The notes below the pieces were generated by a model. That model did not search any database. It saw only the letters and a list, made by a program, of their open reading frames with translations, and was not told the origin of the DNA. A program made the translations under genes and the position numbers. From the sequence record MW845758.1: 64,000 nt of DNA. One strand, given 5' to 3'. This document shows, in pieces, positions 19,356-25,195 of this stretch (within the stretch, counting starts at the first letter, position 1; each line of letters starts with the position of its first letter).

Positions 19356-19769
19356 ATGAACAAGATTGAATACATCGAAGGTCAAGGACTTTTCATCAAC
19401 GATCAACTGATCCCAAATTCCGATGACTACCAAAAATGGCGTGATGTGCACCGCACGTACCACGACGGTTTTAATTTGGTTATCACTAACGAACTGGTGC
19501 TGGGTGCCAACCTCGATAAACTTCATCGCGGTCATTGTTTCCGTATCAGTTCCGAGTGCGCCGGTGGGATTCTCAAAGCTGCTGATTTCACCAGTGGCAT
19601 GTATGCGTTTCGCCAGTTAGGTATCCTTCGCGAGTTGTCAGGCAAACACGTAGGTCAGGGTCATCCGCCAACGGTGCTCAAACCTGATAGCATCGTCATG
19701 GTGAGCTACTTCAGTGAAGATGGCGACCCATTGGCCTTTAACATCTTCTGGGGGTTCTTCAATGACTAG
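19356..19769 (+). CDS. Hypothetical protein (MNKIEYIEG)
   Basis: Track start 19281 lies inside a terminator; ATG 19356 preferred. Confidence 0.7.
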   Translation: MNKIEYIEGQGLFINDQLIPNSDDYQKWRDVHRTYHDGFNLVITNELVLGANLDKLHRGHCFRISSECAGGILKAADFTSGMYAFRQLGILRELSGKHVGQGHPPTVLKPDSIVMVSYFSEDGDPLAFNIFWGFFND

Positions 19770-20337
19770 TCTTAACCCATTAGCGGTTGTCGAACAGGTC
19801 GAGCGTTGGAACGTTGCTGCGCTCGTGTATCAGAACGGCAATATCCGTCAACAAATCACCAAATACTACCGCATGTTAGGTACGGTTGCAGAAGGTGTGC
19901 AGAAGATGGACAGCTTGTTGGTCTCAGCGGGCGTAGGACAGGCTGTAACGACGTTAATCGGCGTACTCGGGTTCTACTCCCGTATTCGCAACGTCTCCGC
20001 AGAACACGTCTCAGAGCTTATACTGAAGAGTGCTCTGAATAACATCCCGCCGGGTTTGAAGTACGGCAACGACTACAACACCATGTTGTTCGAACATCAC
20101 AAGGTAATGACTGAGATGTTTGACGTGCTCTTGGAGAACCAAGAAGCTAAGCGTCAGAACGACATCGTGTTCTACACTAAACTCGCGGAAGCGTTAGCAC
20201 TGCTGCTCAGTATCGCCACATCCAAAGATATCGTGGTGACCCGCAGTATTCTCAACGCCGTCAATAAACTTGAAGTAACCCAAGGCGTCATGAACGAACT
20301 GGGGTTATTCGTCAAAACTGTCACGGGAAATAAATAA
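19762..20337 (+). CDS. Hypothetical helical protein
   Basis: Overlaps upstream stop; TAATG-coupled to thyA. Confidence 0.8.
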
Positions 20338-21344
20338 TGCGTCAATATCTGAATCTGTTGGAAACTGTACTGGCCTACGGTCGTGAAAAGAAAGACCGTA
20401 CCGGTACTGGCACGGTTTCAATGTTCGGTGGTCAGATGCGCTTTGACCTGACCGAAGGTTTCCCACTGGTGACCACGAAGAAGGTTCACCTGCGTTCGAT
20501 TATCCATGAGCTGTTGTGGTTCCTCAAAGGGGACACCAACATCCAGTACCTAAAAGACAACAACGTCACTATCTGGGACGAATGGGCAGATAAGGACGGC
20601 GATCTCGGACCAGTGTATGGTAAGCAGTGGCGGAGCTGGACGGCTCACACGGACATGCCGGTCTTTAACCGCAAGGCGTGCGATGAGTTAGAAGCAGAAG
20701 GCTGGGAAGAAGCCGGCGCGCGTGATTCGAATATCCTGTACACCAAAACGATTGACCAGATTTCCAAAGTCATCGACCAGTTGAAGAACGACCCGGATAA
20801 CCGTCGTATCATTGTCAGTGCGTGGAACGTCAGTGAGTTGGATGAGATGGCCTTAGCACCATGCCATGCGTTCTTCCAGTTCTACACGCGTGAGCTGACG
20901 CTGCACGAGCGTGCGCTTGCCGCGGACATCAACGAAACCGAAGCGTATTTCCTGAACCTCAACGAGAAGCATCGGGAACAATACCATGAAGAGCTCGATC
21001 ATTTAGATACACCTCGTCGTAGTCTGAGCTGTCAGTTGTATCAGCGCAGCGCAGATTGCTTCCTCGGTGTTCCGTTCAATATCGCCTCGTATGCCCTGTT
21101 AACTGAAATGGTGGCACAACAGGTGAACATGGTGGCGGAAGAGTTCATCTGGACTGGCGGTGATGTTCACATTTACTCCAACCACATGGAGCAGGTGAAC
21201 GAACAGCTGACGCGTGACCCACATCCGCTTCCGAAACTGAAAATCAAACGCAAACCTGATTCTATCTTCGACTACCAGTTCGAAGACTTTGAAGTTGAAG
21301 GTTACGTTTCCCATCCTGCGATCAAAGCGCCGGTTGCTATCTAG
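20337..21344 (+). CDS. thyA: Thymidylate synthase
   Basis: [57 protein letters not shown]. Confidence 0.98.
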
Positions 21345-22257: not shown

Positions 22258-22584
22258 GTGGGAAAAGAACTGAAGGTAGCCCAACCAATTGACGTGGGTG
22301 ATGTAACGGTCTCGCCTTTTGCGAGTGTAGGTATCGGCGATGCCCCTGTCGGGAAAACGGGTTTACAGCTCGACTACGACGGGGGTGCTATTGATCCCTA
22401 TGCAGAAGTTTCAGAAGTGGCGAAGTTAAAGGATGGGGCTATCAACCTCTCAACACACGTTGAGGTGGGGGCACACGTTCACGTATCTGATACCGTGGAA
22501 ATCTCTGCTGCTGTTACACAAGACGACCCGCAACACGGCGATACCGTACGCGGTGTTTCTGTCGGTGTGAAGTGGACGTTCTAA
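22258..22584 (+). CDS. Small beta-strand-rich protein with OMP-type C-terminal beta-signal (GVKWTF), no signal peptide
   Basis: RBS GGAG before GTG; alternating hydrophobic strands; terminal Phe. Confidence 0.7.
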   Translation: MGKELKVAQPIDVGDVTVSPFASVGIGDAPVGKTGLQLDYDGGAIDPYAEVSEVAKLKDGAINLSTHVEVGAHVHVSDTVEISAAVTQDDPQHGDTVRGVSVGVKWTF

Positions 22585-22644
22585 CTATTTACGTAATCGG
22601 TTTGTTTTATGTTAAAGCAAACCCCTGAATAAAAGGAAGCAAAG

Positions 22645-22836
22645 ATGTCTCAGAAAGAAAGCTCACTGCAAAGCACCATCGACCAGCACGACCAGATGGT
22701 TGCCGACAACGCGGCAGACAGTTTTGACTTGCCGGGTCTGGATGAAGCAGAAGCACGTGTAGCTGAAAAGCGTGTGTCAGAAGAAAGTCAGGCCGACCTG
22801 TCTGATGAAGCTGACTGCGAAGGCTGCAAGATCTAA
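22645..22836 (+). CDS. Small acidic protein ending in an NrdA-tail-like CEGCKI
   Basis: RBS AAGGA; 63 aa, highly acidic; followed by a terminator. Confidence 0.75.
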   Translation: MSQKESSLQSTIDQHDQMVADNAADSFDLPGLDEAEARVAEKRVSEESQADLSDEADCEGCKI

Positions 22837-22843
22837 GCAGTGT

Positions 22844-22878
22844 CTGTCCCGCTGTGTGCGGGACAGTTTTTCTTTTAC
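22844..22878 (+). terminator. Intrinsic terminator
   Basis: CTGTCCCGC-TGTGT-GCGGGACAG then T tract. Confidence 0.8.
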
Positions 22879-22906: not shown

Positions 22907-24241
22907 ATGGGCGAACAATTTATTCTGCAAGTGCCGTACGTAGCGCTGATGAACCCTGACCAGTACCTGCTGGAAGTAAACGACCAGCTGCGTGACCTGG
23001 CCGAGAAAGGTAAAGCGAACATTTTGTTCCGTGCTATCTCTTCTCTCGACCGTAACATCGAAACCGGCAAATGGTATATCGAAGGTTTGCTGAGTGCAGT
23101 GGCGGGTGAAGCCGAAGACATTGATATCTACGATTGTGAACTCGATTTACCACAGTTGGATATCCTGCTGGCCGGTCCGCTGAACGATGATAAGAAAAAC
23201 ATCGTTGAGCATCCACGCTATGTTAAACTGCTGCAAATCCCTGAATTGATTACGAATATCAAAGGCTGGTCTACCGCCCGTGGTATTCTGGAAAACGGCC
23301 TGTGGTATTCACAAGCGACCAAAATGTACGAAGAAGACGGTGAAGTTGCGCCGGGTGTGGCCAAGAACAAACGCAATCTGATTATCGATGGTGTCGGTGA
23401 TATGATCGTGGTGATGGTCAACCTGCTGGAGCTGTCTAGCTTTAATGCAGTAGCCATCACTGAAATGGTTGCCCGCATGGGCAAAGAAAGCACCCCGGCG
23501 GGGAACGCGCATTATCTGTACCACAAACTACGCATGTCCAATACGCTAGCGGTGGACTACCTGTGGGAAGTGGCGGGTATTGACTCCCCGAAACAAATCA
23601 CTCGCGAAATGTTTGATGAGGATCAAATCAAGTGCGTGGTTGGTCACTTAACCGAGTGCATCTATTACGCTATTGCTTTAGCTAATGCGTACGAATTCAC
23701 GTTGGAACAGGCGCTGTCTCTGGCGTGGGATGAAATCAAAGACCGCACCGGTTTCCTGAACGCTGACGGTGTGTTTGTGAAGGAGTCTGATATGACTGAA
23801 AACGATCGTATCCAACGCGCCCTGAAAGAAACCGAAAAAGCCGGTGACTTTGATGGCGACACCGGTCCGACTATCAAAGTTGAACTGTCAGTAGCTGAAC
23901 AGCTGAAAGACTACGACGGTGATGTCCAGTCTGGTGGTGTCCCTACGAAAACAGTAGAAGTTTCTTACTTCCCGGTTGACTTGGCTATCGATCAGGTCAA
24001 CTTCGCTATCGATGCCTGTGCACAACACGCTAACGTGCAGCCGGGTGAAGTGACGCTGGTACGCGCTGGCCTGTATTACGGCGGGGCAACGCAGCACACC
24101 AAGCCACACGTCCTGTTCGAATTCTTAGCGCGTGGCGCTGAGAGCAGCGTGGTGTATTCTGGTTACGGTGATGAATACTTCAAACTCACCGAAGATGCGG
24201 CGAGCTATCAGGTATTGGAACGTCAGGTCGCTACGCACTAA
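22907..24241 (+). CDS. MazG-like all-alpha NTP pyrophosphohydrolase with extra N- and C-terminal domains
   Basis: QATKMYEEDGE, IIDGVGDMIVVMVNL, AWDEIKDRTGFLNADGVFVKESD. Confidence 0.75.
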   Translation: MGEQFILQVPYVALMNPDQYLLEVNDQLRDLAEKGKANILFRAISSLDRNIETGKWYIEGLLSAVAGEAEDIDIYDCELDLPQLDILLAGPLNDDKKNIVEHPRYVKLLQIPELITNIKGWSTARGILENGLWYSQATKMYEEDGEVAPGVAKNKRNLIIDGVGDMIVVMVNLLELSSFNAVAITEMVARMGKESTPAGNAHYLYHKLRMSNTLAVDYLWEVAGIDSPKQITREMFDEDQIKCVVGHLTECIYYAIALANAYEFTLEQALSLAWDEIKDRTGFLNADGVFVKESDMTENDRIQRALKETEKAGDFDGDTGPTIKVELSVAEQLKDYDGDVQSGGVPTKTVEVSYFPVDLAIDQVNFAIDACAQHANVQPGEVTLVRAGLYYGGATQHTKPHVLFEFLARGAESSVVYSGYGDEYFKLTEDAASYQVLERQVATH

Positions 24242-24747: not shown

Positions 24748-25144
24748 TCGCATCCATCGGGTAAACACGAACAAAGTCCACATCAACGATAAGGCAGCAC
24801 CGGATAACCTCGGTATCGCTGACTGGGTGTGGGACTTGTTCGTGCCTAAGGCACAGAGCGGTTTTGAAATTGTGTTCGTTGACCAACCGCACGACGTTGG
24901 GCCTTGGGCACGTATCGGCAATCCCCGGTTCTTTACTACCGATGCCAAAACGGCAGGCTTCCTGTTACGGGAATGCAAGTTCCGTGGGCACTGCACCGTC
25001 GGTGCAAACGCACTGAAGGTTTCTGAAGAGCTCGGGATGGAAATCCCGTATCTGACCAAACCCGTAGGTGAAGCCGACCACAACGCGCTGATTGTGTGGT
25101 ACAACAACGGCAGTTGGACGCTTGTGATGTGTGACGAGCCGTGA
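24734..25144 (+). CDS. Hypothetical protein (TTG start)
   Basis: RBS AGGAG 6 nt before TTG. Confidence 0.7.
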   Translation: MTELNRIHRVNTNKVHINDKAAPDNLGIADWVWDLFVPKAQSGFEIVFVDQPHDVGPWARIGNPRFFTTDAKTAGFLLRECKFRGHCTVGANALKVSEELGMEIPYLTKPVGEADHNALIVWYNNGSWTLVMCDEP

Positions 25145-25150
25145 ATAAAT

Positions 25151-25195
25151 AAAAGTAACCCACTCCCGTAAAGGAGTGGGTACTTCTTTTTTTTT
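25151..25195. terminator. Bidirectional terminator, repeat copy 2
   Basis: AAGTAACCCACTCC-CGTAAA-GGAGTGGGTACTT with A and T tracts, between convergent genes. Confidence 0.85.

Follow-up and report, generated by a model that had tools for sequence, protein, structure and literature searches.

The 63-aa acidic protein encoded at positions 22645..22836 (+ strand, stop codon included) of the stretch of phage DNA analyzed in this work (64 kb in total, hereafter referred to as the window) ends in what we consider a genuine likeness to the redox tail of NrdA, the alpha subunit of class Ia ribonucleotide reductase (RNR). Our preferred reading, held tentatively and at a little below an even chance, is that this tail protein is a detachable copy of the alpha redox tail, which would act as an electron shuttle in trans and help the class Ia NrdA of the host. 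The window originates from Erwinia phage pEa_SNUABM_11 (MW845758.1; 251,480 bp), a phiKZ-like jumbo phage of the genus Wellingtonvirus, and positions in the database record are obtained by adding 186,000 to the window positions. The tail protein is no invention of the phage, as a homologue of it is encoded by a conserved chromosomal gene (43 aa) found in Erwiniaceae, the host among them. Its action is probably directed at the enzyme with which the host makes DNA precursors, in a manner not described so far.

The tail-protein gene and its family

The 63-aa open reading frame proposed in the preliminary description was found exactly at its position on the + strand, where an in-frame TAA at 22630-22632 rules out any longer reading and thereby fixes the start. 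The encoded protein ends in ...DLSDEADCEGCKI, followed by a TAA stop codon. A Shine-Dalgarno-like ribosome-binding site, AAGGAAG (22633..22639, + strand), can be read from the sequence 5 nt 5' of the ATG, and an intrinsic terminator with a 9-bp stem (7 GC), a 5-nt loop and a T run is located at 22844..22876 (+ strand). Both expression signals that had been ascribed to the gene are therefore present, and the gene is indeed free-standing, as the ten-stranded catalytic barrel of NrdA (PF02867) is absent from its product, in which no Pfam family at all was recognized at E<=0.01. NCBIfam searches likewise gave nothing for the 63-aa protein, so that its only match in the libraries searched (Pfam, NCBIfam and PHROGs) is phrog_10239, a family of unknown function (E 4.7e-6 over residues 25-63). 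This family was matched below E=0.001 by eight of ten scanned members (best value 1.8e-13), while one further member reached E=0.044 and one gave no match.

The tail protein is strongly acidic (pI 4.05; 17 D+E versus 5 K+R). An AlphaFold2 monomer model, built with 32 relatives in the alignment, contains two helices (residues 3-23 and 32-50) followed by a loose tail, with mean pLDDT values per 10-residue block of 64 (residues 41-50), 51 (51-60) and 52 (61-63); residues 51-63 are without secondary structure and of low confidence. Two parts of the protein deserve separate attention. Codons 27-47 (22723..22785, + strand) encode a central acidic/hydrophobic helix, delimited by conserved alignment columns, by helix 32-50 of the model and by the predicted NrdA contacts described below; in the family alignments this is the second conserved element. 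Codons 51-63 (22795..22833, + strand) encode the flexible acidic tail, recognized by its sequence, its low pLDDT and the tail counts given below, with Cys58 (22816-22818), Cys61 (22825-22827) and the final K-I.

Comparison with the orthologue in phage Kwan gave a dN/dS of 0.10 (dN 0.106, dS 1.06). Taken together with the 57 matching protein clusters and with the chromosomal copies in at least 128 bacterial species, this shows that the open reading frame is a real gene under selection and not a product of chance. A search of sequencing runs found none containing the gene.

Near homologues (79-90% identity) were found in phages Kwan and Wellington and in metagenomes, whereas unrelated phages gave weak tblastn matches, every one of which extends through the final residue. 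The translated members include proteins of Xanthomonas phage DIBBI (41 aa), Serratia phage Moabite (89 aa), Salmonella phage KKP 3828 (94 aa) and Erwinia phages AH04 (45 aa), 2910A (52 aa), Yoloswag (146 aa) and Aioli (39 aa). Among 5.8 billion proteins, 63 members were identified with a profile, and a HMMER scan of 1.84 billion cluster representatives (50% identity) returned 57 clusters at E<=0.001. The N-termini differ among the members, about 12 of which carry N-terminal extensions of 60-400 aa; these long forms (127-462 aa) showed no Pfam or PHROG match outside the tail module, and their contigs were uninformative. An N-proximal motif, [KR]-[DE]-L-[ST]-x-Y-[LF], is common to 12 members (P0006-P0008, P0030, P0065, P0077, P0079, P0090, P0092, P0100, P0101 and P0103), and in the window protein it is degenerate, with the Tyr missing. 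Members of the Koutsourovirus type (KKP 3828, L007:3854-4138, as well as P0009-P0011, P0025, P0031, P0034, P0036, P0038 and P0043) have five or six additional Cys residues near the N-terminus. They possess an extra Cys-rich N-terminal stretch, with four Cys close together, and one more Cys ahead of the tail, an arrangement that may point to a metal or Fe-S site within this subgroup.

In the searchable literature, no paper contains the tail strings or a description of such a protein, and nothing relevant was found on small phage or bacterial proteins acting on RNR, in agreement with the earlier view that the protein is undescribed. The chromosomal members of the family are unannotated except for the label "hypothetical protein".

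Likeness of the C-terminus to the NrdA redox tail

The conservation of the terminal Cys pair was examined over 112 retrieved family proteins. A C-terminal Cys pair with two or four intervening residues, followed by two further residues, is present in 107 of them, and none of these tails has lost either Cys (107/107). Counted by type, there are 94 tails of the form Cys-x2-Cys-x-x, 13 of the form Cys-x4-Cys-x-x and one Cys-x3-Cys-x-x; the final K-I occurs in 98 of the 112 proteins, and D precedes the first Cys in 88/94 CxxC tails. The window protein ends in CEGCKI, so that, as in NrdA tails, its Cys pair lies within the last 6-8 residues, and by its pI and pLDDT it also has the flexible, acidic and unstructured arm that characterizes the NrdA tail.

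For comparison, NrdA tails were taken from fetched records. NrdA of E. coli K-12 ends in ...QDDGCESGACKI, and among the enterobacterial NrdA tails (120 clusters) the end CESGACKI is found in E. coli, Salmonella, Erwinia and Pantoea, and CEGGACKI in Pectobacterium and Brenneria. Three family members (P0074, P0077 and P0084) also end in CEGGACKI, and thus agree in 8/8 residues with NrdA of Pectobacterium and Brenneria and in 7/8 with that of E. coli, Erwinia and Pantoea, while P0099 ends in CESGACEI. From typical amino-acid frequencies it can be roughly estimated that chance would give complete C-terminal identity over 8 residues with one or another of a few thousand host proteins in far fewer than one of 10^5 trials. 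A T4-like phage NrdA ends in ...DCSSCKL and a T5-like one in ...CSSGGCTL; the former indicates that CxxC is a natural NrdA spacing too, and the rare family ends T-I and K-L parallel these phage ends.

The Cx4C-subgroup profile could be aligned end to end with residues 752-761 of NrdA at 13.5 bits, a score reached by none of 5000 shuffled sequences, whereas the HMM of the whole family scored -0.1 bits on the NrdA tail, which was equalled by 570 of 1958 scored shuffles. When solved structures were searched with the protein, with the family profile or with the Cx4C subgroup, NrdA was never listed at E<=10, nor was there any other meaningful match. As the likeness goes undetected at database scale and only the Cx4C sub-profile scores, we regard it as mimicry, or else as homology confined to about 10 residues, and not as membership in the NrdA family. 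The proposal that the protein ends in a mimic of the NrdA redox tail is nonetheless borne out, with identity of up to 8/8 residues, the same spacing of 2 or 4 and the same end residues, and the terminal Cys pair proved conserved (107/112, with K-I in 98).

Compared with the redox tail of NrdA (Cys754/Cys759 in E. coli), the family therefore shares a flexible acidic arm at the extreme C-terminus and two Cys with 2 or 4 residues between them, after which K-I, K-L or T-L follows. Unlike it, the tail proteins are separate (about 39-146 aa, a few being longer), lack the catalytic barrel and possess a conserved helix of their own, and they show no statistically detectable homology to NrdA beyond these approximately 10 residues. 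The spacing differs as well, the chromosomal copies of Erwiniaceae, like the window protein, having CxxC and the NrdA of these bacteria Cx4C.

Chromosomal homologues and genomic neighbourhoods

In a scan of one genome per species, a 43-aa chromosomal form of the protein was found in at least 128 bacterial species, belonging to Erwinia (including E. amylovora, the host of the phage), Pantoea, Mixta, Tatumella, Winslowiella, Izhakiella, Kalamiella, Hafnia, Sodalis and Biostraticola; Rouxiella was added by a separate protein profile search. All of the 80 loci kept encode the C-terminal end ADCEGCKI or DDCEGCKI, and the E. amylovora protein (residues 8-43) and the phage protein (residues 27-63) align with 23/38 identities. 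In Pantoea, all 7 changes between the copies are synonymous (0 non-synonymous). At 76/80 loci, a + strand ORF with a length of at least 150 aa precedes the 43-aa gene, its end being less than 300 bp away. At the seven loci inspected, this upstream ORF is about 300 aa long and YedI (DUF808)-like, and it ends 32-46 bp before the gene (284 bp in one case), a gap that makes co-transcription of the 43-aa gene with yedI probable. Pantoea and Mixta loci with Pfam calls have DUF808 as the upstream ORF and a yodC orthologue as the next downstream gene, and across Erwiniaceae and some relatives, E. amylovora included (L075:3001-3129), the gene is likewise located between yedI and yodC. At the syntenic spot of E. 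coli K-12 (L112:4189-5367), yedI and yodC are separated by 78 bp, with no orthologue of the 43-aa gene there. The chromosomal protein presumably does for the cell what the phage copy would do.

In the window, the tail gene had been placed between thyA and a MazG-like gene, and both neighbours are as proposed, with three small ORFs separating the tail gene from thyA. The cluster starts with a MazG-like gene directly 5' of thyA (19714..20337, + strand; phrog_10269, 3.2e-33; phrog_7855, 5.1e-9), which is followed by the gene for the 335-aa thymidylate synthase ThyA (20337..21344, + strand; Pfam PF00303, 1.9e-119), the three small ORFs, the tail gene and a gene for a MazG-like nucleotide pyrophosphohydrolase (22907..24241, + strand; phrog_7855, 1.5e-111; no Pfam match at E<=0.01). 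Two MazG-like paralogues thus flank the thyA and tail-gene cluster. In phage Kwan the tail gene directly follows thyA.

Several further features of this region were observed. The downstream MazG-like protein is extended at its C-terminus by about 150 aa that have no match. The window ThyA (335 aa versus the 266 positions of the Pfam model) was aligned with E. coli thyA in three pieces that cover 69% of the query, from which it follows that it carries one or more insertions; ThyA of Kwan has 372 aa. Among the small ORFs, a 108-aa one (22258-22584) gave sub-threshold matches to outer-membrane beta-barrel families (PF24653, 2.3e-4; PF13505, 4.2e-4), a likeness that is odd in a phage nucleotide-metabolism cluster, and this ORF is missing from the Kwan locus. 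A hairpin at 25158-25181, located between convergent genes ending at 25144 (+ strand) and 25197 (- strand), scores as a terminator on both strands.

The absence of nrdA from the window, as originally reported, was confirmed and extended to the remaining phage genome, where neither nrdA nor nrdB was found. A tblastn search for NrdA and NrdB over 250 kb of pEa_SNUABM_11 gave a best E of 0.18, and no RNR Pfam family was present in the 41 largest ORFs (from about 490 aa upwards, the record being covered up to its last 1.5 kb). No RNR was found either in the 50-kb phage DIBBI, in which the tail gene is present.

The neighbourhoods of the tail gene in other phages, like thyA and MazG in the window, link it to dNTP supply. 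Within five phage lineages, genes of ThyA, dCMP/cytidine deaminase, MazG or thymidylate kinase are located 0-4 kb from the tail gene; thyA lies at a distance of 1.3-2.2 kb in 2910A, Yoloswag and Aioli, and a cytidine deaminase gene at 0.5 kb in Yoloswag. In AH04 and two related metagenomic contigs (L002, L023 and L024), the tail gene is preceded, after a gap of 3-4 bp, by a glutaredoxin (Grx) gene, and in contig L025, with a rearranged gene order, the Grx gene is still found 476 bp from it. The whole genome of AH04 (262,639 bp) encodes NrdB, Grx and the tail protein, and NrdA nowhere. Its NrdB (AH04_199, L116:37409-38539) has 78% identity to E. coli NrdB (PF00268, 7.8e-48), and the 716-aa protein encoded beside nrdB is no RNR. 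Since AH04 has no NrdA, its NrdB is an orphan, which would have to pair with the alpha subunit of the host. An RNR beta subunit is useless without alpha, and so AH04 appears to supply the host alpha with three accessories, i.e., a radical generator, a reductant and a free tail. Several contexts (Moabite, DIBBI, L026 and L030) have no nucleotide-metabolism neighbour. In the AH04-like metagenomic contig L023, a gene similar to tad2 (anti-Thoeris) is present at 1781-2080, about 3 kb 5' of the Grx and tail-gene pair.

Putative action on NrdA and alternative explanations

The complex of E. coli NrdA with the window protein was predicted using the alignment of the latter. The three scores, 0.40, 0.42 and 0.35 versus 0.01 for the best control, are rated as weak support, and passes of up to 0.60 are false more often than not, except where the guess had been likely from the start; the mark used was passed by 58/80 solved complexes and by 2/110 mismatches. 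The confident interface residues of the small protein (27, 29-32, 34-36, 38-39, 42-43 and 46-47) belong to the conserved helix, and the predicted contacts on NrdA are residues 314, 318, 321, 323-324, 347-350, 394-404 and 711-716. According to a 2.6-A cryo-EM structure, NrdA residues E314, N322, R323, G324 and E397 contact the body of NrdB, and G707-Q712 contact NrdB residues 360-368 (PMC11551348, supplementary tables S9 and S10). Because the predicted contacts overlap these NrdB contacts, the predicted docking site is the NrdB face of NrdA; the model may simply reproduce known structures in which an NrdB peptide is bound to NrdA. The Cys tail was not placed in the prediction, which gives no support for its entry into the NrdA active site.

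The tail protein resembles the C-terminal peptide of NrdB in having a short acidic/hydrophobic segment and in the overlap of its predicted surface on NrdA with the NrdB contacts, but sequence profiles reveal no corresponding likeness. The idea that the N-proximal motif and the central acidic block are a copy of the NrdB tail near Tyr356 was dropped as far as sequence is concerned, since the profile of the motif region scored 0.4 bits on E. coli NrdB and ranked 567 among 6258 decoy ORFs and 3000 shuffles. The likeness to NrdB of the S-S-Y-L stretch in 12 members is likewise not significant.

The shuttle that we favour would operate as follows. Residues 51-63 form a flexible acidic arm, the two Cys and final K-I of which imitate the NrdA tail. 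Given this likeness, the arm would be reduced by glutaredoxin or thioredoxin and would undergo dithiol exchange with the disulfide arising in the NrdA active site at every turnover. The central helix (approximately residues 27-47) is tentatively predicted to dock on the face of NrdA that NrdB uses too, by which the local concentration of the arm would be high whenever NrdB disengages. Faster or more robust re-reduction would then allow the host NrdA to produce more dNTPs during infection, and a 251-kb phage without its own RNR would depend on this output. We infer that the effect is to help rather than to block. Both Cys are kept in every tail, and a mere blocker would not need them; phages without RNR, one of them with 251 kb to copy, could hardly afford to shut down the host enzyme; and AH04 combines the tail gene with Grx and an orphan NrdB. 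Counting against the shuttle, NrdA already has a tethered tail, so that it is not evident what additional free tails would contribute, and the likeness spans only about 10 residues, with CxxC versus Cx4C in the host and with some contexts devoid of nucleotide genes. Taken as a whole, the original reading is upheld in part, by the tail likeness, the free-standing gene, the missing nrdA and the dNTP context; the likeness is too brief to show up when profiles are compared with solved structures.

A broader proposal, which we consider possible and on balance doubtful, is that the detachable alpha tail represents a third kind of class Ia RNR partner, which would dock at the NrdB site, alternate with NrdB and re-reduce the enzyme in trans; it would belong to the core genome of Erwiniaceae and would be used by nrdA-less phages to overdrive the host alpha subunit, sometimes together with an orphan NrdB and glutaredoxin.

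A serious rival, in our estimation an unlikely one, is that the protein is a small disordered inhibitor of the host class Ia RNR, the helix of which would block the NrdB face while the tail would compete for the active site or for reductants, in the manner of yeast Sml1 or of synthetic NrdB C-terminal peptides. It remains serious because the predicted site is the NrdB face, where published NrdB contacts are overlapped and where docking would suit an inhibitor equally well, and a chromosomal copy could act as a brake on dNTP synthesis. Like Sml1, Spd1 and Hug1, the tail protein is small, largely unstructured and free-standing; PMC6382339, citing Zhang et al. 2007, names Sml1 as blocking the regeneration of the R1 active site, and in that paper and in PMC4245953 proteins of the Sml1 type are proposed to act at the step in which the C-terminal Cys pair of the large subunit regenerates the active site. 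However, these proteins are eukaryotic inhibitors without a Cys-pair tail of their own, they are absent from all homologue search results of the tail-protein family, and the genomic context of the tail gene argues for a helper over a brake: neither pEa_SNUABM_11 (251 kb) nor DIBBI (50 kb) has an RNR and both need that of the host, the AH04 set of NrdB and Grx without NrdA fits helping the host NrdA, and a steric blocker would need no Cys pair, yet the pair is kept in 107/107 tails.

We hold both the redoxin decoy and the metal site to be less likely. The tail of class Ia RNR is a natural substrate of Grx and Trx, and a free copy of this motif, tightly linked to a phage glutaredoxin gene, might soak up host or phage redoxins or be charged by them as a buffer, and so redirect the flow of electrons while leaving NrdA untouched; this is quite unlikely in our view, since it leaves the conserved central helix and the predicted NrdA docking unexplained and a phage would hardly put a decoy beside its own Grx. 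The known RNR reductants themselves (glutaredoxin, NrdH and the T4 thioredoxin NrdC) are, like the tail protein, accessories of RNR electron supply in phage nucleotide-metabolism clusters, and in AH04-type phages Grx directly adjoins the tail gene, but the tail protein, with its two helices and loose tail, has neither a thioredoxin fold nor a Pfam or NCBIfam match, and its motif copies the substrate (the tail) and not the reductant. Improbable, too, is the binding of Zn or Fe by the Cys residues, across a dimer or with a partner, in a role unrelated to RNR, with a convergent likeness to NrdA. CxxC pairs are frequent metal ligands, and the additional N-proximal Cys of the Koutsourovirus-type members would fit such a role; most members, however, have two Cys only, in contrast to the four Cys at fixed spacing of zinc-ribbon and rubredoxin sites, and the two end residues remain NrdA-like across a spacing that switches between 2 and 4 (3 in a single member), some tails are identical to NrdA tails in 8/8 positions, and the neighbours are nucleotide-metabolism and Grx genes. 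Finally, the small size and the C-terminal Cys could suit a RiPP precursor or a spurious ORF, but both readings were rejected as very improbable: no maturase-like gene is common to ten different neighbourhoods, strong purifying selection acts over the whole ORF, and the changes among the Pantoea copies are exclusively synonymous.

RNR sets the supply of DNA precursors, and its re-reduction via the alpha tail is among the least visualised of its steps, as the tail is disordered in structures. If the shuttle reading is true, a natural, separately encoded tail would offer a handle on this step, and the family would represent a new type of bacterial RNR accessory factor as well as a new route by which RNR-less phages exploit the host enzyme. 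The family further provides a clean example of the mimicry of a short motif, common to a small protein of the host and to many unrelated phages.
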